Shown here: positions 7,708-33,240 of the stretch, one piece after another | Layout: each line of letters begins with the position of its first letter | Numbering within the stretch: the first letter of the stretch is position 1 | IMG/VR virus record: IMGVR_UViG_3300023179_004149 | Coordinates: 1 to 64,000 of that record | DNA length: 64,000 bases | Reading direction: 5' to 3' (one strand) | The notes under the pieces: model-generated | What the model was told of the DNA's origin: nothing | Database searches by the model: none | Seen by the model: the letters and a program-made list of their open reading frames with translations, nothing else | Translations under genes and position numbers: made by a program

Positions 7708-8382
7708 ATGACACCACTTTATACACAAATTGAGTTTGATTCAGCCAAATCGCAGACCAAGTTACCTTGTAAATGCGAATATTGTACCAATACGTTCCAT
7801 AAACCAAAAAAAGAAATAGTCTACGAATTAAAAAATAATCGTGGTGCTATTCGTTTTTGTTCAATACGATGTTGTAATCATAATAGCAAGGGAATTAAAC
7901 AATTAGTATTATGTGATCAATGCAATACGCAATTTGAAAAACACACTTCTCAAATTAAAAAATCTAAGAACAATTTTTGTTCGAGATCATGTTCTGTTAC
8001 ATACAATAATAAACATAAAACCACTGGTAATAGGCGTTCTAAGCTCGAAATTTGGCTCGAAGAGCAACTAACAACACTTTATCCTAATCTTATTATAGAT
8101 TATAATAAAAAGGATGCCATTGGCTCTGAACTTGATATTTATATCCCATCACTTAACCTGGCTTTTGAATTGAATGGGATTTTTCATTATGAACCCATAT
8201 ACGGTTTAGATAAACTAAACCAAATTCAAAACAATGATAATAATAAATTCCAATACTGTTTAAAATATGGAATATCTTTATGCATTATTGATACATCAGA
8301 TCAAAAATATTTTAAAAAGATAACATCTAAAAAATATTTAGATATTATTATTGATATTATAAATCAAAGAACTTCTTATTAA
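7708..8382 (+). mobile_element. Free-standing endonuclease gene (Zn-finger repeats plus PD-(D/E)XK-like domain)
   Basis: CEYC/FCS.RC, CDQC/FCSRSC; ELDIYIPSLNLAFELNGIFHY; antisense to the tRNA cluster. Confidence 0.75.
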
Positions 8383-10305: not shown

Positions 10306-10976
10306 TGAAAGTTTTTAATTCCATACTAACAATAGCATTAAACGAAGGATTAATTCGCACAGAAGAAATTAATAATACCATTAAGATATTACGTAATTCT
10401 TATCCAGACGCTCAAATAACGAGGTATATGGAGAGCATTGAAATTAGTCTTTTAACTGATAATTTAGATCGTTCAAAAATTGAATCATTTTTGAAGTTGA
10501 TAAACAATTTGGGTTGGTATCCGTCAGGTTATTACGCTAAGTCAGAATGGCAAAAGTTCACAAGAGATGGTTTTATTCGAGACATACAAAATTTTAGAAG
10601 GGTAGATCTGATAATTGAAAAGAAATATGACCGAGAATTCAAGAAACAAGATATATTTTACCATGCCACTAAATTGAAGTACGCTCATAAAATAGAAAAG
10701 ATAGGATTAACACCAAGAGCAAAATCCAAAAAAGGCTATCATCCTGAAAGAATTTACCTCGCTATATCATACGATGCGGCATACGATATTCTTGGTTTGT
10801 TATACGATCATGATGAATATTCGGACCCGAATTGGGTTATTTATGAGATTGATGTAAGTAATATACCTAACTTTAAAACAATGGTCGACCCCAACTTTGA
10901 TGGGGGTGTTTATACAACACAAAACATACCACCATCAGCGATAAAACGATTTAAAATTTTAGATCTTTCAAAATAA
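10305..10976 (+). CDS. ADP-ribosyltransferase-fold protein (Tpt1/KptA-like C-terminal domain)
   Basis: FYHAT...IEKIGLTPR, RIYLA, IYEID, YTTQNIPP. Confidence 0.55.
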   Translation: MKVFNSILTIALNEGLIRTEEINNTIKILRNSYPDAQITRYMESIEISLLTDNLDRSKIESFLKLINNLGWYPSGYYAKSEWQKFTRDGFIRDIQNFRRVDLIIEKKYDREFKKQDIFYHATKLKYAHKIEKIGLTPRAKSKKGYHPERIYLAISYDAAYDILGLLYDHDEYSDPNWVIYEIDVSNIPNFKTMVDPNFDGGVYTTQNIPPSAIKRFKILDLSK

Positions 10977-11311
10977 TTAATCGAATATATCAAGTTTTTG
11001 ACCCTCGTAAGTGGTTATGCTGGATCCATCAACAAAGTATATCTTGGTTTCACTCCGATCCCTGGTAGCTGGCCACAAAATCTATTCGGTGCTGGTATTG
11101 ATTCGAGGTAAATATTTCTGTTCAGTGGAAATCTCATGTACAGTTTTTTTTATTAGGTTTTTAATTTTTGGTCTAGTTCTCAAATCATCATAATAATCCT
11201 GATAAGTCTTAGCTTCCGTGGATTTACCTTCATCTTTACAGTTTTTTATTAACTGTATAAGCCGATCTAAGTTAGACATAATATTGTATTCGTGTATGTT
11301 GTGTTCACAAC

Positions 11312-13000: not shown

Positions 13001-13072
13001 GGGTCAAGCACGGTATCGATCCGAGTTCTCCTGATTCACAGTCAGGCACATCACCTTAATGCTTCAAGACCC
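13001..13072 (-). tRNA. tRNA-His(GTG)
   Basis: CCTGA-CTGTGAA-TCAGG; G-1:C73 possible; A54-type T loop. Confidence 0.85.
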
Positions 13073-14247: not shown

Positions 14248-14907
14248 TTAATATCCGTAATATATCATTACGTTCTTTTTCCAGTTAAATGTCTTATAAA
14301 TGTTTATAAGCCCAAATATACCGTACTCATACTTCCAACTGGTTGTAATGGTATCACCATGTTCTAAACTAAACGGTGGTAATCCACACCACTCCATATT
14401 CATTGACTTAACATGATTTATCATTTCAATAATAGCTGTCTGTTCTTCGCCAGTTAATTTGGTTCCATCAAAAGTATATTTTGTAAACGGCTCCGAACTC
14501 CAATGGTATTCACTCTCAATTGACTTAAGAAATTCAGACGATCTTTCTTTTTCTCGAGAAAACGGTGCCACCATCACTTGATAGTACTTCTTTATTCTTT
14601 CCTGATAGGTCGAAATCACATAAGCCAGAAACTCTTTAGTCACAATATAAAAATCATATTCATCGTAACGAGCCATTAACTCCTTATTCTTAAAAAATCT
14701 TTTTAATGATTTTTTTGGTGGTTCAAACCCATCGTATTTACCAAATTCATACAACTCAGTACCATACTCATATACGCCTTTATACCAATCATCGTCAGAA
14801 ACATGTTCCTTATTAGGATAATGGTCTTTAAGTTGTTCAAAAGACATTGACTTGATTTTATTGTACTCTCGTTTAGGCATCGAGCCTATGTATGTTCTAT
14901 AACCCAT
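14248..14907 (-). CDS. Hypothetical protein
   Basis: 219 aa ORF. Confidence 0.7.
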   Translation of the reverse strand: MGYRTYIGSMPKREYNKIKSMSFEQLKDHYPNKEHVSDDDWYKGVYEYGTELYEFGKYDGFEPPKKSLKRFFKNKELMARYDEYDFYIVTKEFLAYVISTYQERIKKYYQVMVAPFSREKERSSEFLKSIESEYHWSSEPFTKYTFDGTKLTGEEQTAIIEMINHVKSMNMEWCGLPPFSLEHGDTITTSWKYEYGIFGLINIYKTFNWKKNVMIYYGY

Positions 14908-15871: not shown

Positions 15872-16062
15872 CTTTCTCGTTAAAATACTGTTTTAATTCG
15901 TCAATGGTACAGTCCAATCGATATGATATCATATCTTTGGACATGGATAAAAGATAATTTTTAACATCTGTTAAAAAAGATATCATCTCTTCTTTCCACT
16001 CTTCAGTACCGACAATATGTTTTGTCTTCATCTTTATAGTTTTATATCTATAAATATCAGAG

Positions 16063-16135
16063 TGATTCCAGTGGGGATCGAACCCACACCTAATTGATTT
16101 AGAGTCAACTATACTGCCGATTATACTATGGAACC
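16063..16135 (-). tRNA. Amber suppressor tRNA (CTA)
   Basis: GTTGA-CTCTAAA-TCAAT anticodon arm; complete cloverleaf, short variable loop, A73. Confidence 0.85.
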
Positions 16136-17971: not shown

Positions 17972-18385
17972 TGGTGGAGGTAGGGGCATCGAAGCCCCGT
18001 GTCAAGTAATAGCAAATTAACTTTCATTCACATGTTTATCAACTTTTTCTAAAGGTGAAAAATAAATGGAACTCTATTTGTCGGGGTAACATACCGTGGT
18101 ATGTTGCGCTGTCGTCAATACCGAATCCATTGTCCTGGGTATTGCAACATTTAAACCCCCTCACGCTTTGCAGATTTTAGCGACTGTTGTCGATAACCCC
18201 GAAGGATTAAGCGAATGCAGGTTCTGCAACCTCAACAGGCTGACCGTTGAGAACGATGTCTCCGTCAGCGGTAATATAGCTTGCGCCATTTAACTGTTCA
18301 CATAGGTTATTTAAGTGTTTCCAATGCTAACACTACATGCATCAAATTAAAGAACTAATTTACCGATCAAAACCTGGTTACCCCC
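17972..18385 (-). ncRNA. ssrA: tmRNA with a 26-aa tag (GASYITADGDIVLNGQPVEVAEPAFA*, 18287-18207)
   Basis: 5' GGGGGTAACCAGGTTTTGAT; 3' GACACGGGGCTTCGATGCCCCTACCTCCACCA with G3:U70; UUAAAU just before the GGC resume codon. Confidence 0.9.
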
Positions 18386-19567: not shown

Positions 19568-19624
19568 TAGTCCCCGAAGGATTCGAACCCTCACCAAGTA
19601 TGCTTACCGTTACACCAGAGAACC
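19568..19624 (-). ncRNA. Anticodon-armless tRNA-like RNA (57 nt)
   Basis: Acceptor, D arm and T arm intact; D and T arms joined by only ACTTGGT. Confidence 0.65.
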
Positions 19625-27698: not shown

Positions 27699-27773
27699 TG
27701 GAGCGGTGGGGAGAAATTGAATCTCCGTCCTTGCGTTGGAAGCGCAATATAATAGCCACTATACGACCACCGC
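27699..27773 (-). tRNA. tRNA-Gly(TCC)
   Basis: TTGCG-CTTCCAA-CGCAA; U73; encoded CCA. Confidence 0.88.
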
Positions 27774-28213
27774 ATTAAGTTCCTGGGCAACCATATGATA
27801 CAAGCGCTTGTACTGATTGGGAACGCCGTTACGTTATAACATCCTAAGATTTATAAGAGGCTTGACGGCCCACCTTATTTTTAATCCCCACGAACATACA
27901 TCCATTCACATAGATGACCCAGGATTTGAACCTGCAAAGTCCGTTTATGTATTCCTACCACACCTTCCGCTGGGACAGGGATAATTTTAAAAGTAAAGAA
28001 CTTTACCCATTCTTCATGAGCGGTTTGGCATAACCGCAGGGGAATCCTTAAACCATCCATTCATTTTTTAAAAGGGAATGGAACCTTTCAGGGTAACCCC
28101 TATCCTCACTACCATCCATTTTTAGGAAAATGGAAAACCAATATTCAACTCGATTGCGATAATACCAGGAATTGCCTCCATTATCAATATTAACCAATTC
28201 GAGTTTTTTATCT

Positions 28214-28564
28214 TTAACCCACAGAAATTTGTAAACGATAAAGCTGTGACTCATTTCTATCATTAAGAACACGTAATCTTACTACGAGTTCTTCAAGAAG
28301 ATTAATATAACTTATCATCTCCTTATTGTTATTATCAGCGTTATCTGGACGACTTTTATCAAGCAAATCAGGTTCATAACCAATTATACGATTAAGCTGA
28401 TTTTTAACAGAATAATGTAAATCATACCCGCGTTCTACTTCTTCCTGAAGTCTAGCAAGTAACCCATAAAGTGTTGGCATTTCATCTACCGCGTTTACCT
28501 TGTTACAAGGTAAGTGTGGTTCGTTCTTAGCGAATCCAGAATTTGTATGTGTTTTTGTATTCAT
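28214..28564 (-). CDS. Hypothetical protein
   Basis: 116 aa ORF. Confidence 0.55.
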   Translation of the reverse strand: MNTKTHTNSGFAKNEPHLPCNKVNAVDEMPTLYGLLARLQEEVERGYDLHYSVKNQLNRIIGYEPDLLDKSRPDNADNNNKEMISYINLLEELVVRLRVLNDRNESQLYRLQISVG

Positions 28565-28580
28565 ATTAATAAATTAATTG

Positions 28581-28651
28581 AGTAGATAATGAGAATCGAA
28601 CTCACCTCTCCGCCATGGCAAGGCGGTATAATACCGATATACTATATCTAC
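28581..28651 (-). tRNA. tRNA-Gly(GCC)
   Basis: CCGCC-TTGCCAT-GGCGG; U73. Confidence 0.85.
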
Positions 28652-28889
28652 AAATGAGGCGATTATTCGGTACGCCTCGATTCCCTATCCACCCATTTGC
28701 GGTGGCTCCAGCGGCATCTGTTTTTTTTAAACCTTTCTACTAATCGTTTGTCTATACGACCAGGTTCATTCAGACACGGTAGTGTCAACTCTGACGAGAA
28801 CGCCATGTGCAGCGTTAATAATTGATTGATTTTTCATTTTGCTCAACCAAGAAAACACGGTGACTTTTAGTGAGTTTCCCCTCTCATTG

Positions 28890-29010
28890 TTGGGCACGAG
28901 GGAATTGAACCCCCACCTCTCGCTTATGATGCAAATTGTCGTTAAATGTGCTGAATTAAATCCCTACGGATTGTCCGATGTTTAACGTGCTACCATTACA
29001 CTAATGCCCA
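28890..29010 (-). ncRNA. tRNA-like RNA with a large insertion carrying a CAGCA box
   Basis: TGGGCAT/GTGCCCA acceptor, D arm and T arm intact; insertion with AATCC-GTAG-GGATT hairpin then TTCAGCA; residual CAT loop. Confidence 0.7.
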
Positions 29011-29021
29011 ATATTTTTTCG

Positions 29022-29093
29022 AGGACACACTCAGAACCGACCTGAGAACTCATGCTTACAAGGCAAGTATTTTTCCAGCTAAACTATGCGTCC
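29022..29093 (-). tRNA. tRNA-Thr(TGT), atypical T loop
   Basis: CTTGC-CTTGTAA-GCATG; CTCAG-GTCGGTT-CTGAG. Confidence 0.7.
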
Positions 29094-29235
29094 AATTCAA
29101 CTTTTAAATTATCCCCAGAGTTGCAACTGTGCTGGAATACGATCCAGAGGTTTAGTGGCTGGTAACGTAATATACCTTAACCAGACTTTCCTATCTTCGA
29201 TCCATGATGGTCGACCATCAGAGGGCTTTTGTTAG

Positions 29236-29309
29236 TTGCGAAAGGAGGATTCGAACCTCCGACCTCACAGGTTATGAGCCTGGCGAGCTGGCCTCTGCTC
29301 TATTTCGCA
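29236..29309 (-). tRNA. tRNA-Met(CAT), initiator-like
   Basis: CCAGG-CTCATAA-CCTG; fMet-like D arm. Confidence 0.85.
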
Positions 29310-29338
29310 ATGTTTACCTTTAGGAACAAAAAGTTCCA

Positions 29339-29414
29339 TGGTTGCGGGTAATGGATTCGAACCATTGATCTCCTGGTTATGAGCCAGACGGGATGACCAC
29401 TTCCCTAACCCGCA
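29339..29414 (-). tRNA. tRNA-Met(CAT), initiator-like, second copy
   Basis: TCTGG-CTCATAA-CCAGG; encoded CCA. Confidence 0.87.
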
Positions 29415-29514
29415 ATGTATATCTTTTAACAAAAACTTTTTTGTATCAGTAAAGCTCATCGCTTTAATGTTAAAAATTAAGTTTACTGTTTGCATATATA
29501 ATATGCATCCGCTT

Positions 29515-29599
29515 TGGCGGTCTCGATGGGATTCGAACCCATGATCTTCGCCGTGACGCGTTACAGGGCGACAGGGACGACCAACTCCCCTACAAGACC
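29515..29599 (-). tRNA. tRNA-Asp-like gene with a 7-nt insertion in the anticodon loop
   Basis: TCGCC-CTGTAACGCGTCAC-GGCGA; G73; encoded CCA. Confidence 0.75.
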
Positions 29600-29737
29600 A
29601 TTTTAGTTAATACATAGAACTCTTGTTGGTATTTCTGTTATTTAACCAACTTACCCCAAGCTAACAGTTGCTATTGAGTTCCGCCAGAGGCTACGGCATA
29701 TGTATTAACCGTGAGTAGGGTACCAAGTTACTCACTT

Positions 29738-29813
29738 TGGTAGCGCTGGATGGATTCAAACCATCGGCCTTCCCTTTAGAAGAGGGACGCTCTTTTCACT
29801 GAGCTACAGCGCC
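29738..29813 (-). tRNA. tRNA-Arg(TCT)
   Basis: TCCCT-CTTCTAA-AGGGA; encoded CCA. Confidence 0.9.
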
Positions 29814-30045
29814 ATATGGTTATTTAATTCTAACCCTTTCAACCGATTCAATCTCAGCATCTCCTTTAATGAGTGCTTCGAGTGTACCTTTTCTGTAGGA
29901 TAAAGAATTGTTATTCATTATCTGGTAAGAATCGCAGATGATTGTATCTCCGTTCATCAATGTGATTTTGTATTTCATATCGTTTTTGTTTTTTACAAAG
30001 ATAAATCAAGTTTTTGAAACCACCAAATTTTTGTTTAAAAGTTTC

Positions 30046-30151
30046 AGGATGTTTTTTGTTTTTTGTTTTTATTTCAGACGGGGCTCGAACCCGTGACCCA
30101 AGGCTCTAACCAACTGAGCTACCAAAATGGATTAATTGCGGAACACATCCT
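30046..30151 (-). ncRNA. CAGCAA-box RNA variant (CCGCAA) enclosing tRNA D and T arms with no anticodon arm
   Basis: AGGATGT-GTTCCGCAA...GCTCAGTTGGTTAGAGC-CTTGGGTC-ACGGG-TTCGAGC-CCCGT...ACATCCT. Confidence 0.7.
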
Positions 30152-30167
30152 CCAAACTTTTAAATTG

Positions 30168-30238
30168 CGGTCTATCTCGGTTACGATCCGAGCACTTCTG
30201 TTAGACAGACAGATATGATACCAATTCACCAATAGACC
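30168..30238 (-). tRNA. tRNA-Asp(GTC)
   Basis: TCTGT-CTGTCTA-ACAGA; G73. Confidence 0.85.
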
Positions 30239-30253
30239 AAATACTTTAATAAG

Positions 30254-30378
30254 TCCCGACAAGAGGACTCGAACCTCTACCTTTTTCGTTTAAAGAAATT
30301 GTTTTTAGATAATGACTTGCTGTAACCATCCACTCTGGATGACTCTGTTTTTTAATGCTACCATTACACCATGTCGGA
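30254..30378 (-). ncRNA. tRNA-like RNA with a large insertion carrying a CAGCAA box
   Basis: TCCGACA/TGTCGGG acceptor, D arm and T arm intact; insertion CATCCA-GAG-TGGATG-GTTACAGCAA. Confidence 0.72.
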
Positions 30379-30479
30379 ATTTTTAAAATGAAAAACGAGT
30401 AATTGACTCTATGCCTCAAACGTCAATGTTCCGACCATTGTACCGTGTTCACCCATGAGTGGGTCGTTTTTCAAATTAG

Positions 30480-30550
30480 CGGGGCTGCCTGGGAACGATC
30501 CAAGTTCTGCAAGTTAACAGCTTGCTGCATCACCTTAATGCTTCAGCCCC
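30480..30550 (-). tRNA. tRNA-Asn(GTT)
   Basis: GCAAG-CTGTTAA-CTTGC; G73. Confidence 0.87.
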
Positions 30551-30581
30551 GTATTCACCAATATGTCAAAGATCACTTAAG

Positions 30582-30654
30582 TGGTGCCCCTCGGTTTCGA
30601 TCCGACCCCCCAAGATTTTCAGTCTTGTGCTTCCACCAGGTTAGCTTGGGCACC
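30582..30654 (-). tRNA. tRNA-Phe(GAA), divergent copy
   Basis: CAAGA-CTGAAAA-TCTTG. Confidence 0.82.
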
Positions 30655-30758
30655 ATAAAACCACTCTATTTGTACTGTTATACCATCATCTAAGCCAACC
30701 TCAGTGTGGATTTCATACATAACCTCTGTTCAGTGATTCATTTCTGAATTAGAGTGGT

Positions 30759-30834
30759 TGGTGGCACGGCCACGAGTTGAACGTGGGACACCCAGATTTT
30801 CAGTCTGGTGCTCTACCAACTGAGCTACCGCGCC
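30759..30834 (-). tRNA. tRNA-Phe(GAA)
   Basis: CCAGA-CTGAAAA-TCTGG; encoded CCA. Confidence 0.92.
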
Positions 30835-30849
30835 ATTTTATTTGTATTA

Positions 30850-30930
30850 CAATTCATCGGAATGGGTCTTTTAGCTTGAATCATTAAGAGTGAATTGCTT
30901 GTAGAGTTTGCTGTAATCATTCCCGAATTG
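30850..30930 (-). ncRNA. CAGCAA-box RNA
   Basis: CAATTCGGGAATG-ATTACAGCAA...CATTCCGATGAATTG; same terminal stem as 20173-20273. Confidence 0.6.
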
Positions 30931-31237
30931 TTTTACAAAAGTAAGAAGAGTTTTTCAATTTTCCAAATCTTTTTTGAGATTTTTTTATTTGTAAACTACT
31001 CCGTTTTTTTCTTCTTGTTTAAGAGCTTCAATCTCAGATACCAGGTAATTGAATTCTGTCTCTGACATTTGTTTTTTTTCTTTGGTTGATAAGCGACTGT
31101 ATTTATACTCAATCCCTTTCCAGTTTTCTTCAAGCATCTTTAGCAAAGCTAACCAGACATGCCAATTTAGTTTTTTCATTTGTTTCAGTGTTGTGTTTGC
31201 AAAAGTAAGAATTATTTTTGAAACCACCAAATTTATT

Positions 31238-32245
31238 TTAAATGAAACCAATTTCCTCAATATCTTTAGTCAATTGCAGAACTTTAGCTTTTTGTCCGTT
31301 TCTGTATTTATTCCATGCGGTCATTACCAGTAACACAATTTCTTTTTGAGAAAGGATATTACCCTTTTTCATATCTTTGTTATGTTTATTTAACGCCAAT
31401 CTTCTTCTAAGAGCGTATATTGGTGAGTCATCTTCTAAGTTAGAACCGCACGCTAACTTATTCATGAAGTAAACAGCATCCTCAGACGATATTTCGGCCA
31501 TTACATAATGTAATGCACTAAATAAAGCTGGCGGCATAAATTTACAAATTTTATAGTTACGAACACCATAAGTAGCCGCCTCTTGAAGTTTTTCGATGTC
31601 GTTAGAAACTTGCTCAGTTCCTTCTGTATTGGTCATTACTCGTTTTGATGATCCGATGTCCGAATACCTACCCTTTTTAAAACAATTCAAAAGTTTGGTC
31701 ATACCAATTACTGCGGTATGGTTTTTAAGACCTCTTAAAGATTCGTTAGTGTTACTTGCGATAATAATCGCATCACTTAACGTTCTCGTTTTACCCTGAT
31801 CCATTTTTGTGAAATCTTTATCTTCCACACCTTGAACAATCACAGTATCAAAATATTCAGCACCGCTTTGCAAAAAAGCATAAATTCTATTACGACCATC
31901 AACAAGTTTATAATCGAGACTGAATTTAAGGGCTTCACCAGTTAAACCCCAATCACCATTATTAAATGATGTAACATAGTTTTTTATCGATGTTTCGTAT
32001 AATCTCCTATTAACAAAACCAGTTCGTAACATTAGTTTAGCCATACTACGATCAACCCTTAAAACCCCAGTACGCAATTTTTGATCGACACCAGTGGTTG
32101 GTAATCCAGATATAAAACTAACTAAAGTTAGTTTTTCATCTGGGAGTAATTCCTCGTATATTTCTTCACCGAGTTTAGGTTTTTTTGCTTTCTTGTTTTT
32201 TGCTTCGACTTCCTGAATTGTTGCTTCTGTAAAATTACTTACCAT
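31238..32245 (-). CDS. ParB/Srx-like N-terminal domain protein
   Basis: NRRL......Y......G.W...GE...F.....LVDGRNRI.A. Confidence 0.6.
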   Translation of the reverse strand: MVSNFTEATIQEVEAKNKKAKKPKLGEEIYEELLPDEKLTLVSFISGLPTTGVDQKLRTGVLRVDRSMAKLMLRTGFVNRRLYETSIKNYVTSFNNGDWGLTGEALKFSLDYKLVDGRNRIYAFLQSGAEYFDTVIVQGVEDKDFTKMDQGKTRTLSDAIIIASNTNESLRGLKNHTAVIGMTKLLNCFKKGRYSDIGSSKRVMTNTEGTEQVSNDIEKLQEAATYGVRNYKICKFMPPALFSALHYVMAEISSEDAVYFMNKLACGSNLEDDSPIYALRRRLALNKHNKDMKKGNILSQKEIVLLVMTAWNKYRNGQKAKVLQLTKDIEEIGFI

Positions 32246-32303
32246 GGGATTATTTATTTTTTAACAAAAGTAAGAATTATTTTCGAAACCACCAAATATT
32301 TTA

Positions 32304-32335
32304 ATAAAAAAACCTGAACTTTTTGGGTTCAGGCT
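32304..32335 (-). terminator. Attenuator terminator 4
   Basis: GCCTGAAC/GTTCAGGT stem plus T7. Confidence 0.8.
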
Positions 32336-32366
32336 CTTTTTGATATTGTTATTTGGTATTGACAAC

Positions 32367-32441
32367 TTAACAAAGAAAGCCCTGGCCGAAATCTCTATTT
32401 CTGCCGAAGAATCTGTCCATCGTATTTATTATCTGTTTCAT
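32367..32441 (-). CDS. Leader peptide 4 (24 aa, MKQIINTMDRFFGRNRDFGQGFLC)
   Basis: Manual translation; N/T/M/D/R/F/G core; CAGGGCTTTCTTTG pairs with the terminator left arm. Confidence 0.75.
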   Translation of the reverse strand: MKQIINTMDRFFGRNRDFGQGFLC

Positions 32442-32558
32442 TGAATTTGTGTGATTTTATATAAATATACGCAATTTTTGAAAAAACCAAGTCTTTCTAA
32501 AAAATTTTTTATTTTGTACTGTTGAAAGATAGTATGTGGATAATCGTAAACAATAATC

Positions 32559-33041
32559 TTAACGAGCTTCACGGTCAGCCGCATACGTGCTGGCCCATGC
32601 GAATGGTTTACCAACCGCAGCGTAGCCTTTACTCATCGCATAACCAATACTAGAATCGTATAATTGGTTTGATACTTCTTCTGGTTTTGAGTTATAGTCG
32701 ACATGAATTGAGATGTTAATACCTAGATCTTTCAATTCATCAGCTACTTCAACTGAGTATTCAATTTCTTCCCACAATCTACGGCTGTTTGACCCATCTT
32801 GTAAAGCTCTTTTACCTTTAGATGTGGCTTTGTTGTCAATATTAATCTTTTTCGATATAACATGAGCTCCTTTACCTTGTTCATACAAACAAACGGTAAC
32901 AGCATATACTATGACAGCACCATGTACCTGAGAATCACAACCGATCCATATTTGGGTTTCAGACTTATCTACAAGCCATTTTTCCACATAATCCTTTAAG
33001 TCGTCAATTATTACACCTTGATGGGTTTTGAACTTTGCCAT
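32559..33041 (-). CDS. RNase H-like YkuK/DUF458 family protein
   Basis: IWIGCDSQ, G.GAH, RL.EE...S, IHVDYN, KP.AWAST.AAD. Confidence 0.8.
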   Translation of the reverse strand: MAKFKTHQGVIIDDLKDYVEKWLVDKSETQIWIGCDSQVHGAVIVYAVTVCLYEQGKGAHVISKKINIDNKATSKGKRALQDGSNSRRLWEEIEYSVEVADELKDLGINISIHVDYNSKPEEVSNQLYDSSIGYAMSKGYAAVGKPFAWASTYAADREAR

Positions 33042-33240
33042 ACAATTTTTTTGCAAAAGTAATTAATTAATGCGAGAAAACCAAATGTTTTTAATAATTT
33101 ATCTCCACATATTATTTTTATTTTTTATAAGATATTCACCATTAACAATTAATTCGGTTTTTTTATTTTGATATTTAAAACGTTCGATGGTTTCTAACGC
33201 TTTTAAATACTGCTTATTAGTTATTATTTTTGACATATAT

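Follow-up and report, generated by a model that had tools for sequence, protein, structure and literature searches.

A candidate codon-matched leader attenuator preceding a tRNA gene cluster in a giant freshwater phage

Ribosome-mediated transcription attenuation is best known from amino-acid operons, where a short leader ORF with a dense run of regulatory codons precedes an intrinsic terminator and a mutually exclusive antiterminator, the 5' strand of which is masked by a ribosome that reaches the end of the ORF. In E. coli and Salmonella, trpL and hisL are the classical single-amino-acid cases, while thrL (Thr and Ile codons) and ilvL (Ile, Leu and Val codons) sense several amino acids through one leader. 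The pheST operon of E. coli extends this principle to the translation machinery, as its pheM leader controls phenylalanyl-tRNA synthetase, although it senses a single amino acid and controls a synthetase in a cellular genome. T-box riboswitches also adjust the expression of translation-related genes to tRNA status through a terminator/antiterminator choice, but they bind uncharged tRNA directly and have no ORF. Large phages such as T4, T5 and other jumbo phages carry many tRNA genes in clusters, presumably to keep translation going when host tRNAs are unsuitable or depleted. How phages control these genes is essentially unknown, and current debate concerns why they carry them, whether for codon usage, host shut-off or escape from tRNA-cleaving defences. 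We found no published precedent in full-text searches for leader-peptide attenuation of tRNA genes.

Here, a candidate locus of this kind was examined in a 64,000-nucleotide stretch (hereafter the window; positions 1 to 64,000 of IMG/VR record IMGVR_UViG_3300023179_004149) of a 320,934-bp phage genome from a lake metagenome. Compared with the multivalent amino-acid leaders, the genes presumably regulated are tRNA genes rather than biosynthetic genes, the candidate sensed set comprises seven amino acids and is defined at the level of synonymous codons by the tRNA genes downstream, and the antiterminator 5' strand (region 2) lies inside the last codons of the ORF. The Rfam Thr_leader model (RF00506) scores only 30.4 bits against a gathering score of 55 (E=0.043), covering only 32303-32369, and no T-box match was found in 8000-33500 at E<=1. 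The features of the locus, all on the minus strand, are as follows.

32462..32491 (-), promoter-like element of the leader, with CTTG at -33 and TATATTTA at -7, a variant of the Bacteroidota TTTG / TAnnTTTG consensus
32367..32441 (-), leader ORF of 24 codons plus TAA, from ATG 32441 to TAA 32369-32367, encoding MKQIINTMDRFFGRNRDFGQGFLC
32385..32426 (-), sensor run, codons 6-19, all 14 of which are read by cluster-4 tRNAs
32384..32405 (-), small predicted hairpin inside the sensor run (GGC.GAAAU....AUUUC.GCC), a possible RNA polymerase pause hairpin, the pause role being inferred
32371..32384 (-), antiterminator 5' strand (region 2), covering the last five codons of the leader
32330..32342 (-), antiterminator 3' strand (region 3), overlapping the 5' arm of the terminator
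32306..32338 (-), intrinsic terminator with a 12-bp stem, a 7-nt loop and a T7 tract
32265..32296 (-), consensus Bacteroidota-type promoter directly after the terminator
31238..32245 (-), 335-aa ORF, weakly ParB/DndB-like, a lineage-specific insertion that replaces an ~82-nt stem element (Z) found in relatives
31200..31231 (-), consensus promoter in front of the small ORF
30985..31179 (-), conserved 64-aa ORF of unknown function
30936..30967 (-), consensus promoter in front of element X and tRNA-Phe
30836..30934 (-), element X, an ~95-nt RNA with a long closing stem and a CAGCAA motif
27699..30834 (-), tRNA cluster 4: Phe, Phe, Asn, an interrupted tRNA, Asp, a mini-tRNA, Arg(TCT), Asp with a 7-nt loop insertion, Met, Met, Thr, Gly(GCC) and Gly(TCC), with small ORFs and further promoters interspersed

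The codon content of the leader, as noted in a preliminary description of the locus, was confirmed. Residues 6-22 are N T M D R F F G R N R D F G Q G F, and 16 of the 17 codons (all but Gln-CAG), or 14/15 by a structure-based definition, are read by tRNAs of the cluster at 30834-27699. The Arg codons are AGA x3, matching tRNA-Arg(TCT), and the Gly codons are GGC x3, matching tRNA-Gly(GCC). Codons of this type make up 36% of codons in long ORFs, which gives P(>=16/17)=9e-7, and the run is the top-scoring segment for the cluster-4 codon set in all six frames of the whole genome, with a score of 14 against 11 for the next. Furthermore, three more leader and terminator units in the window precede the other tRNA clusters, and each of the four leaders matches its own cluster (4x4 table, chi-square 104.9, p=1.6e-18). 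For instance, leader 4 uses AGA where Arg(TCT) is downstream, while leader 1 uses CGT/CGC where Arg(ACG) is downstream, and the His codons in leader 2 are explained by a tRNA-His(GTG) at 13001-13071 that ARAGORN missed at default settings. A higher-scoring run for cluster 1 at genome position 73325-73281 is an off-frame reading of a Thr/Ala-repeat coding region and not a leader.

The terminator core CCTGAAC (32333-32327) pairs with GTTCAGG (32319-32313) and is followed by seven T (32312-32306), and the stem extends to 12-14 pairs by A/U and G/U pairing. The antiterminator proposed in the preliminary description is exact in its coordinates, as CAGGGCTTTCTTTG (32384-32371) pairs with CAAAAAGAGCCTG (32342-32330) at -11.5 kcal/mol and takes 4 of the 7 core bases of the terminator's 5' arm. 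The three promoters that it placed at 32265, 31200 and 30936 are exact TTTG-N20-TAnnTTTG matches, and the window has 16 such sites against 2.4 +/- 1.6 expected, all on the minus strand. The leader's own promoter-like element departs from consensus in both boxes and is nearly identical in six relatives. The same layout of leader, terminator and antiterminator holds for leaders 1-3, where the imperfect stems of leaders 1 and 3 were missed by a strict terminator search and were read directly from the sequence.

Two points of the preliminary description need correction. The two tRNA-Asp genes that it listed are one canonical tRNA-Asp (30167-30238) and an Asp(GTC) ortholog with a 7-nt insertion in its anticodon loop (29515-29599), and the cluster also holds an interrupted tRNA (30253-30378) and a mini-tRNA (30070-30128). 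Moreover, the ParB-like label rests only on weak evidence, namely 25-27% tblastn matches to actinophage proteins, some annotated as ParB-like nuclease domain, and protein-atlas neighbours that include ParB_N, DGQHR and DUF6551 clusters. A DGRNR motif is visible in the sequence and the protein matches phrog_5931, of unknown function, at E=1e-40, but there is no Pfam, NCBIfam or PDB sequence hit.

Eleven orthologous loci from metagenomic relatives keep the ORF, the terminator and an antiterminator upstream of a Phe/Asn/Asp/Arg/Met/Thr-type tRNA cluster, and the ATG and reading frame are conserved in all relatives. Sensor residues are conserved or swapped within the set, while the C-terminal tail varies freely at the amino-acid level and keeps RNA pairing. 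Amino-acid changes among close relatives stay inside the tRNA set (R/G, D/N, G/D, a T/M swap, and R/E where tRNA-Glu is in the cluster), and more distant orthologs have quite different peptides that again match their own clusters. Cognate leader-cluster matches sum to 85, whereas the mean over all 5040 re-pairings is 77 and only 0.4% of re-pairings reach 85 (exact permutation p=0.004). Relatives are denoted here by locus number (L002 to L043). A Glu codon occurs with tRNA-Glu in L018, and His, Ile(ATA), Val and Lys codons occur with those tRNAs in L022 and L034. Similarly, Ile codons occur with tRNA-Ile in the leader-1 homolog of a further relative (G001), and Ala codons with tRNA-Ala in the leader-3 homolog.

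Four of 12 consensus pairs of the terminator show compensatory changes across 10 orthologs, and the small hairpin inside the sensor run is predicted in every ortholog at the same place although the sequence differs, for example GUGA/UCAC in L033 and L034. An antiterminator is possible in all 11 orthologs, with equivalent duplexes in 10 orthologs ranging from -8.8 to -29.5 kcal/mol. Five orthologs have at most 6 of 1000 shuffles as stable and five lie at 0.012-0.059, while L002 is weakest at 0.114; in the window itself the pairing is only moderate, with 5.9% of shuffles as good. Folding with a ribosome footprint gives an antiterminator when the A site is in codons about 3-15, and in L018, L019 and L022 it gives none from codon about 17 to the stop. 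However, L016 and L021 keep a few arm pairs there, and the window and L002 do not switch off in this model. As the window's terminator arm also finds other upstream partners in this equilibrium model when the ribosome sits late in the ORF, the on/off contrast is less clean here than in L018, L019 and L022.

The preliminary description inferred that later insertions between the terminator and the first tRNA may have partly uncoupled this cluster, or that it is under dual control, and the synteny of the relatives supports this inference. The leader belongs with the tRNAs and not with the ParB-like gene, which is absent from all relatives; one metagenome contig joins 31239 to 32260 with 82 other letters in place of the gene. 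In the three deeper relatives L022, L033 and L034 the terminator ends 20-26 nt before the first tRNA. The conserved 64-aa ORF module is confined to the six-member clade that holds the window, and an HNH endonuclease is unique to L016. Nevertheless, a consensus promoter directly after the terminator also occurs in the outgroups L036 and L042/L043, and the variant TATATTTA of the leader's promoter-like element also occurs in L042. An attenuated promoter followed by an unattenuated one therefore recurs, so dual control may be a design rather than decay, although without transcript data partial uncoupling and dual control cannot be told apart in this genome.

With fair confidence, and in the absence of transcript, ribosome-profiling or reporter evidence, the locus is best read as a ribosome-mediated transcription attenuator whose sensor codons are those decoded by the phage tRNAs encoded downstream. 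In the proposed mechanism, transcription starts at the promoter-like element near 32490-32462 and the leader is translated. When the tRNAs for N/T/M/D/R(AGA)/F/G(GGC) are plentiful, the ribosome would run to the stop codon and cover region 2, so that the terminator hairpin forms and the transcript ends at 32306. When any of these tRNAs is scarce, because of a poor match to the host pool, host shut-off or tRNA-cleaving defences, the ribosome would stall within codons 6 to about 15, leaving region 2 free to pair with region 3, and RNA polymerase would read on towards the tRNA cluster. The product would relieve the stall, making the circuit a negative-feedback regulator of tRNA supply. This unit, one of four in the genome, descends from an ancestor in which the terminator directly abutted the first tRNA. 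A promoter-bearing 64-aa ORF module then entered in the clade's ancestor and a ParB-like gene in this genome only, and as a result, on this reading, the cluster now receives transcription from at least three unattenuated promoters as well as the attenuated one.

The strongest alternative, though an unlikely one, is that the unit is a relic or insulator that now mainly ends transcription from upstream (the RNase H-like operon and its own weak promoter), while the tRNAs are made from the internal promoters and the codon match is history rather than present function. Three consensus promoters and 1.47 kb lie between terminator and tRNAs, so the attenuator may contribute little to tRNA output in this genome. 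In addition, the leader's promoter deviates from consensus whereas relatives whose terminator abuts the tRNA have a consensus promoter, and mobile genes have landed at this junction here and in L016. However, across the six relatives that share the small-ORF module the start codon, frame, sensor codons, terminator and antiterminator potential are all kept, and amino-acid changes stay inside the tRNA set, a pattern that indicates continuing selection on the sensor. When the HNH gene split the terminator in L016, a new 3' arm restored a full terminator, and in the window no terminator blocks read-through into the tRNAs.

It is also doubtful that the same switch reports amino-acid starvation rather than shortage of the tRNA molecules themselves. 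Ribosome stalling cannot by itself tell lack of a tRNA from lack of its charging, as in the trp and his attenuators, and stalling here would respond to starvation as well. Yet making more tRNA does not relieve amino-acid starvation, so the feedback would be pointless, and the sensor set is defined by which tRNA genes lie downstream, down to the synonymous codon (AGA versus CGY, and ATA with tRNA-Ile(UAU)), and follows their gains and losses. Less likely still, the regulated target in this clade could be the protein-coding cargo behind the switch, with the tRNAs at most co-regulated. The 64-aa ORF is the first conserved gene after the terminator in all six clade members and is conserved at protein level, but it has its own consensus promoter in every relative, leader content tracks tRNA content and not any protein, and deeper relatives and the three other units have no protein gene between terminator and tRNA. 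Chance resemblance or an ordinary small peptide gene followed by the terminator of the upstream operon is very improbable, for although the N-terminal two thirds of the peptide are well conserved among close relatives, the codon statistics, the four matched units, the divergent but cluster-matched peptides of distant orthologs and the freely varying tail speak against it.

A scan of IMG/VR with an element X pattern gave 13 loci, of which 12 were chance matches inside coding sequence with no tRNAs and only L002 was a true relative. A DNA search of GenBank phages with the whole region hit only tRNA genes of unrelated phages, and locus searches with the ParB-like protein and with the 206-aa and 219-aa neighbours, together with a JGI metagenome scan, returned nothing useful or only the window's own contig; a scan of genome contigs found nothing. 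Homologs of the 219-aa protein (14248-14907) are widespread in other jumbo phage contigs, but those loci show no comparable tRNA/leader synteny, and there is no match in GenBank phages. Two megaphage records with 36-38% RNase H-like homologs showed no leader units in the 40 kb examined. Searches for the function of the 64-aa ORF gave no family hit, and the genome has no bS21 gene, which sets it apart from the published bS21-encoding freshwater phages.

More broadly, it is somewhat more likely than not that a clade of giant freshwater phages of Bacteroidota runs a modular tRNA-supply regulator, in which every major tRNA gene cluster is headed by a leader ORF that is a codon barcode of the tRNAs behind it, re-written as tRNA genes move between clusters, are gained or are lost. 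This would be the first case of leader-peptide attenuation controlling tRNA genes and a regulator that directly senses its own RNA products through translation. It would show that the phage measures decoding capacity in real time and makes tRNAs on demand, extend a textbook mechanism to a new class of targets, and give a sequence signature (short ORF, terminator and tRNAs with matching codon sets) that can be searched for in any phage or bacterial genome. The relatives of unit 4 would then form a natural series from tight attenuation to dual control, running from a terminator abutting the tRNA, through an added promoter and an added ORF, to an added mobile gene. The leaders also provide an independent read-out of which tRNAs a cluster is meant to contain, as the Ala codons in leader 3 point to a lost tRNA-Ala. 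Finally, element X has a paralog at 20276-20166, upstream of leader 1, and its stem arms covary between the two copies.

The contig is 320,934 bp long (34.5% G+C), was assembled from a lake-water metagenome and is held by IMG/VR as a complete virus record, of which the window is the first 64 kb. All of its tRNA genes lie in the window on the minus strand, in five groups, and a CCA-adding enzyme / poly(A) polymerase family gene (PF01743, PF12627; 1407-2579, minus strand) fits this large tRNA set. The dense TTTG-N19-21-TAnnTTTG sites, 16 found against 2.4 +/- 1.6 expected and all on the coding strand, point to a Bacteroidota host, an assignment inferred from the known Bacteroidota promoter consensus.

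The features of the fourth unit are as follows.
32441 (ATG) to 32369-32367 (TAA), minus strand: leader ORF encoding MKQIINTMDRFFGRNRDFGQGFLC.
32384-32371, minus strand: antiterminator 5' strand, which pairs with 32342-32330.
32338-32306, minus strand: terminator, CCTGAAC/GTTCAGG with a 7-nt loop and T7, extended by A-U and G-U pairs to 12-14 bp.
32265, 31200 and 30936, minus strand: three promoters, all perfect consensus sites.
30834-27699, minus strand: tRNA group with Phe x2, Asn, Asp, Arg(TCT), Met x2, Thr, Gly(GCC) and Gly(TCC).

The preliminary description of this locus was confirmed, and the coordinates it gave for the antiterminator are exact. Of the codons for residues 6-22 of the leader, 16/17 are read by tRNAs of the downstream group, and the match holds at the level of synonymous codons, as Arg is AGA three times and Gly is GGC three times. 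Such codons are 36% of codons in long ORFs, so that P(>=16/17)=9e-7, and a local-score scan of all six frames of the whole genome puts this run first for that codon set, 14 against 11. However, two details needed correction. The second of the two tRNA-Asp genes in the preliminary description is an Asp(GTC) ortholog with a 7-nt insertion in its anticodon loop (29515-29599, minus strand), and the designation of the intervening gene as ParB-like is only weakly supported. Other aberrant tRNA-like genes on the minus strand include one with a ~45-75-nt insert in the anticodon region (30253-30378) and two mini-tRNAs that appear to lack the anticodon arm (30070-30128 and 19568-19624). In addition, a wcaG RNA-like match (28046-28142, minus strand; 39 bits against a gathering score of 42) lies inside tRNA cluster 4, between the two Gly tRNAs.

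The unit is one of four, as the other three tRNA groups have the same layout directly upstream, each leader being enriched for the codons of its own cluster.
20138-19975, minus strand: leader 1 (ATG 20138), run LRQRQLQLLQL, then a terminator, then Arg(ACG), Leu, Leu, Gln, Gln, Leu.
14145-14010, minus strand: leader 2 (14145), run VIIKHIKHVIAK, then Lys, Lys, Ile, Val, His, Ile.
9773-9605, minus strand: leader 3 (9773), run SWSASSYEPSYPAYE, then Tyr, Pro, Pro, Ser, Trp, Ser, Glu.
13001-13071, minus strand: tRNA-His(GTG), which explains the His codons of leader 2; it was missed by default ARAGORN but is found by Rfam and by a relaxed ARAGORN run.

When each sensor run was defined by structure, from codon 5 up to the start of the antiterminator strand, own-cluster matches were 11/15, 11/14, 13/20 and 14/15, and the 4x4 leader-by-cluster table gave chi-square 104.9, p=1.6e-18. 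A better cluster-1 run elsewhere in the genome is an off-frame artefact of a repeat-coding gene. At the end of tRNA cluster 1 there is a tmRNA-like match (17972-18385, minus strand; 41.6 bits against a gathering score of 47, E=1.3e-13), followed by a terminator at 17925-17897. A tRNA with anticodon CTA (16062-16135, minus strand; amber suppressor type) lies next to tRNA-Cys, and this pair, which is conserved in a relative (locus L053 in relative G001), has no leader unit in front of it.

The full leader RNA of the fourth unit folds with the terminator plus an upstream imperfect hairpin that pairs the sensor region with the last codons (-33.6 kcal/mol, z=-3.8). Without the 3' arm of the terminator, the last five codons (region 2) pair with the 5' flank and arm of the terminator (region 3). 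Each ortholog was then folded with a 30-nt ribosome footprint placed at every codon, on transcripts ending just before the 3' arm. With the A site at codons about 3-15 the 5' arm is held in an antiterminator, and from about codon 17 to the stop codon the antiterminator is absent in L018, L019 and L022, three of the orthologous loci described below. L016 and L021 keep a few arm pairs at some late codons, and in the window and L002 the contrast is blurred; in the window the 5' arm stays paired upstream at late codons, with the two UUCGGC repeats in the leader as candidate partners.

Region 2:3 duplex energies in the eleven orthologs are -11.5 (window), -14.1, -8.8, -14.2, -12.0, -20.0, -16.7, -13.5, -19.8, -29.5 and -14.9 kcal/mol. 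Against 1000 shuffles of region 2, five orthologs have at most 0.6% of shuffles as stable and five lie between 1.2% and 5.9%, while L002 is at 11%. The partner sequences differ (GGGCUUUCUUUG/CAAAAAGAGCCY, GGGGCUC/GAGCCC, GGUUCCCUAUG/CAUAGGGAACC, GGGGUUUCU/AGAAACCCC), and the pairing is therefore kept by covariation, not by sequence conservation. Similarly, the terminator itself shows compensatory changes in 4 of 12 consensus pairs. A small hairpin inside the sensor run recurs in every ortholog with different sequence, although a pause function for it is only an inference by analogy with trpL. Leaders 1-3 have the same design, with 9-20-bp antiterminators that start just after the sensor run.

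To examine synteny, the RNase H-like gene just upstream (32559-33056; PF04308) was used as the anchor and graded relatives were recovered. All of them except L023/L024 have a leader ORF plus terminator at the same place, followed by a tRNA cluster.

Table. Arrangement between terminator and tRNAs in the loci recovered with the RNase H-like gene (locus; RNase H identity; arrangement).
L016; 87%; leader MRQTINTMDRFFGGNRDFGQGFLC. An HNH endonuclease gene is inserted in the loop of the old terminator, a new 3' arm restores a perfect terminator, and the old 3' arm is left behind downstream.
L002; 82%; no ParB-like gene. Promoter, an ~82-nt stem element (Z), promoter, 64-aa ORF, promoter, element X (a stem element), then tRNAs.
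L018; 69%; as L002, but Z is absent and element X is shortened.
L019; 59%; as L002.
L021; 52%; as L002.
L022; 57%; terminator ends 20-26 nt before tRNA-His, with nothing between.
L033; 59%; as L022.
L034; 54%; as L022.
L035-L040; 48%; one or two consensus promoters, and in L036 an X-like stem, but no ORF.
L041-L044; 43-44%; as L035-L040.

In L016 the HNH gene, of the homing-endonuclease type, occupies 10660-11175, and it is the insert that supplies the new 3' arm. Furthermore, a freshwater metagenome contig joins 31239 to 32260 with 82 other letters between them, which matches the Z element found in the relatives. An RNase H-like tree places L036, L042/L043 and L023 outside, with L022, L034 and L033 forming a grade, and the six small-ORF genomes form a clade with support 91/92, the inner four of which have 99/98. 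As the tree rests on a 150-180-aa protein and is midpoint-rooted, the order of events is likely but not proven. In the resulting history, direct abutment of terminator and tRNA is the state in the nearest outgroup grade, the small-ORF module arose in the ancestor of the clade, the HNH gene is specific to L016, and the ParB-like gene is specific to this genome and replaces Z. The preliminary description had named, as the alternative that would count against it, a leader always linked to the ParB-like gene and never to these tRNAs; the data show the opposite.

The ParB-like gene sits exactly where a member of a family of 65-130-nt elements, placed right after promoters, sits in relatives. Each element has a long closing stem, whose arms covary between copies, and a (U/A)YCAGCAA-like motif just 3' of the 5' arm (CCGCAA in the 30160-30030 copy, CAGCA in L036), and one copy encloses a mini-tRNA. 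They could be processing stems or cassette borders.
30934-30836, 20276-20166, 9860-9795 and 30160-30030, minus strand: copies in the window.
L016 11221-11305, L002 3070-3155 and L036 ~7745-7815: copies in relatives.

Leader content follows tRNA content. L018 has Glu at leader position 16 and a tRNA-Glu in its cluster, whereas the window has Arg(AGA) there and keeps tRNA-Glu in another cluster. L022 and L034 have His, Ile(ATA), Val and Lys codons, and their clusters start with tRNA-His and also contain Ile(TAT) in L022, and Val(TAC) and Lys(TTT) in L034; in the window those tRNAs sit in cluster 2, whose own leader carries V, I, K and H. For seven loci with at least 10 visible tRNAs, cognate leader-cluster matches total 85, against a mean of 77.0 and a maximum of 86 over all 5040 re-pairings, and only 0.38% of re-pairings reach 85. 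Clusters cut by contig ends make this conservative, but relatedness of the loci makes it less than a clean probability. Among the six close relatives, the variable sensor positions change within the set (R/G, D/N, G/D, a T/M swap, and R/E), while the tail after region 2 varies freely (QGFLC, KGTLLL, WGSLLL, TGKLYS, PGSLCI).

Whole-record tRNA maps of three relatives and the corresponding regions show homologs of the other leaders as well, which are present in the relatives G001 and G002. One, MKNVNNIIRLQQLQLLILRDGAS..., is followed by Arg, Leu, Leu, Gln, Ile(GAT), Leu, such that Ile codons and tRNA-Ile appear together. Another, MRNSRLTVVAASWAPSYEPSSAYES..., is followed by Tyr, Pro, Ser, Trp, Glu, Glu, Ala(TGC), which explains the otherwise unmatched Ala codons of leader 3 in the window; leaders 2 and 3 both contain Ala codons, although no tRNA-Ala was detected in the window genome. 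A third, MKKIVIVKHSKHVKHF..., is followed by Lys, Lys, Arg, Val, His, His.

Every sequence-level component of the switch was demonstrated, together with its conservation and covariation, and the interpretation is supported by synteny, phylogeny and covariation. The best-supported reading is classical ribosome-mediated attenuation with an unusual target, the tRNA genes themselves, although translation of the ORF, kinetic coupling and the nature of the signal are inferred. On this reading, scarcity of any tRNA in the set stalls the ribosome in the sensor run, the antiterminator forms and the cluster is transcribed, whereas abundance lets the ribosome reach the stop codon and mask region 2, so transcription ends. 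As such, the element appears to work like the multivalent thr and ilv attenuators and, in its purpose, like the pheST attenuator. It is not a member of any curated RNA family, as no T-box match was found and the match to the threonine operon leader of Rfam (Thr_leader; 32303-32369, minus strand), which covers the terminator part of the unit, scores only 30.4 bits (E=0.043) against a threshold of 55. Full-text literature searches, which did not extend to most subscription journals and so cannot exclude prior description, found no account of leader-peptide attenuation of tRNA genes in phages or bacteria, and a paper on similar-sized freshwater Bacteroidota phages mentions tRNA counts only (PMC9723584).

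For the fourth unit in this genome the output may be diluted by three unattenuated consensus promoters, with no intervening terminator. Relatives with a consensus TTTG/TAnnTTTG leader promoter (L022, L033, L034), whose terminator abuts the first tRNA, have no internal promoter, whereas relatives with the TATATTTA-type leader promoter (the window's clade, with the window's own element at 32462-32491, and L042) do have one. This may mark two promoter classes, the second with a CTTG or TTGA / TATATTTA variant. The correlation fits a division of labour between basal and on-demand transcription, but it could equally mark weakening of the attenuated route. Nevertheless, the continued conservation of the whole switch in all six small-ORF genomes argues against a dead relic.
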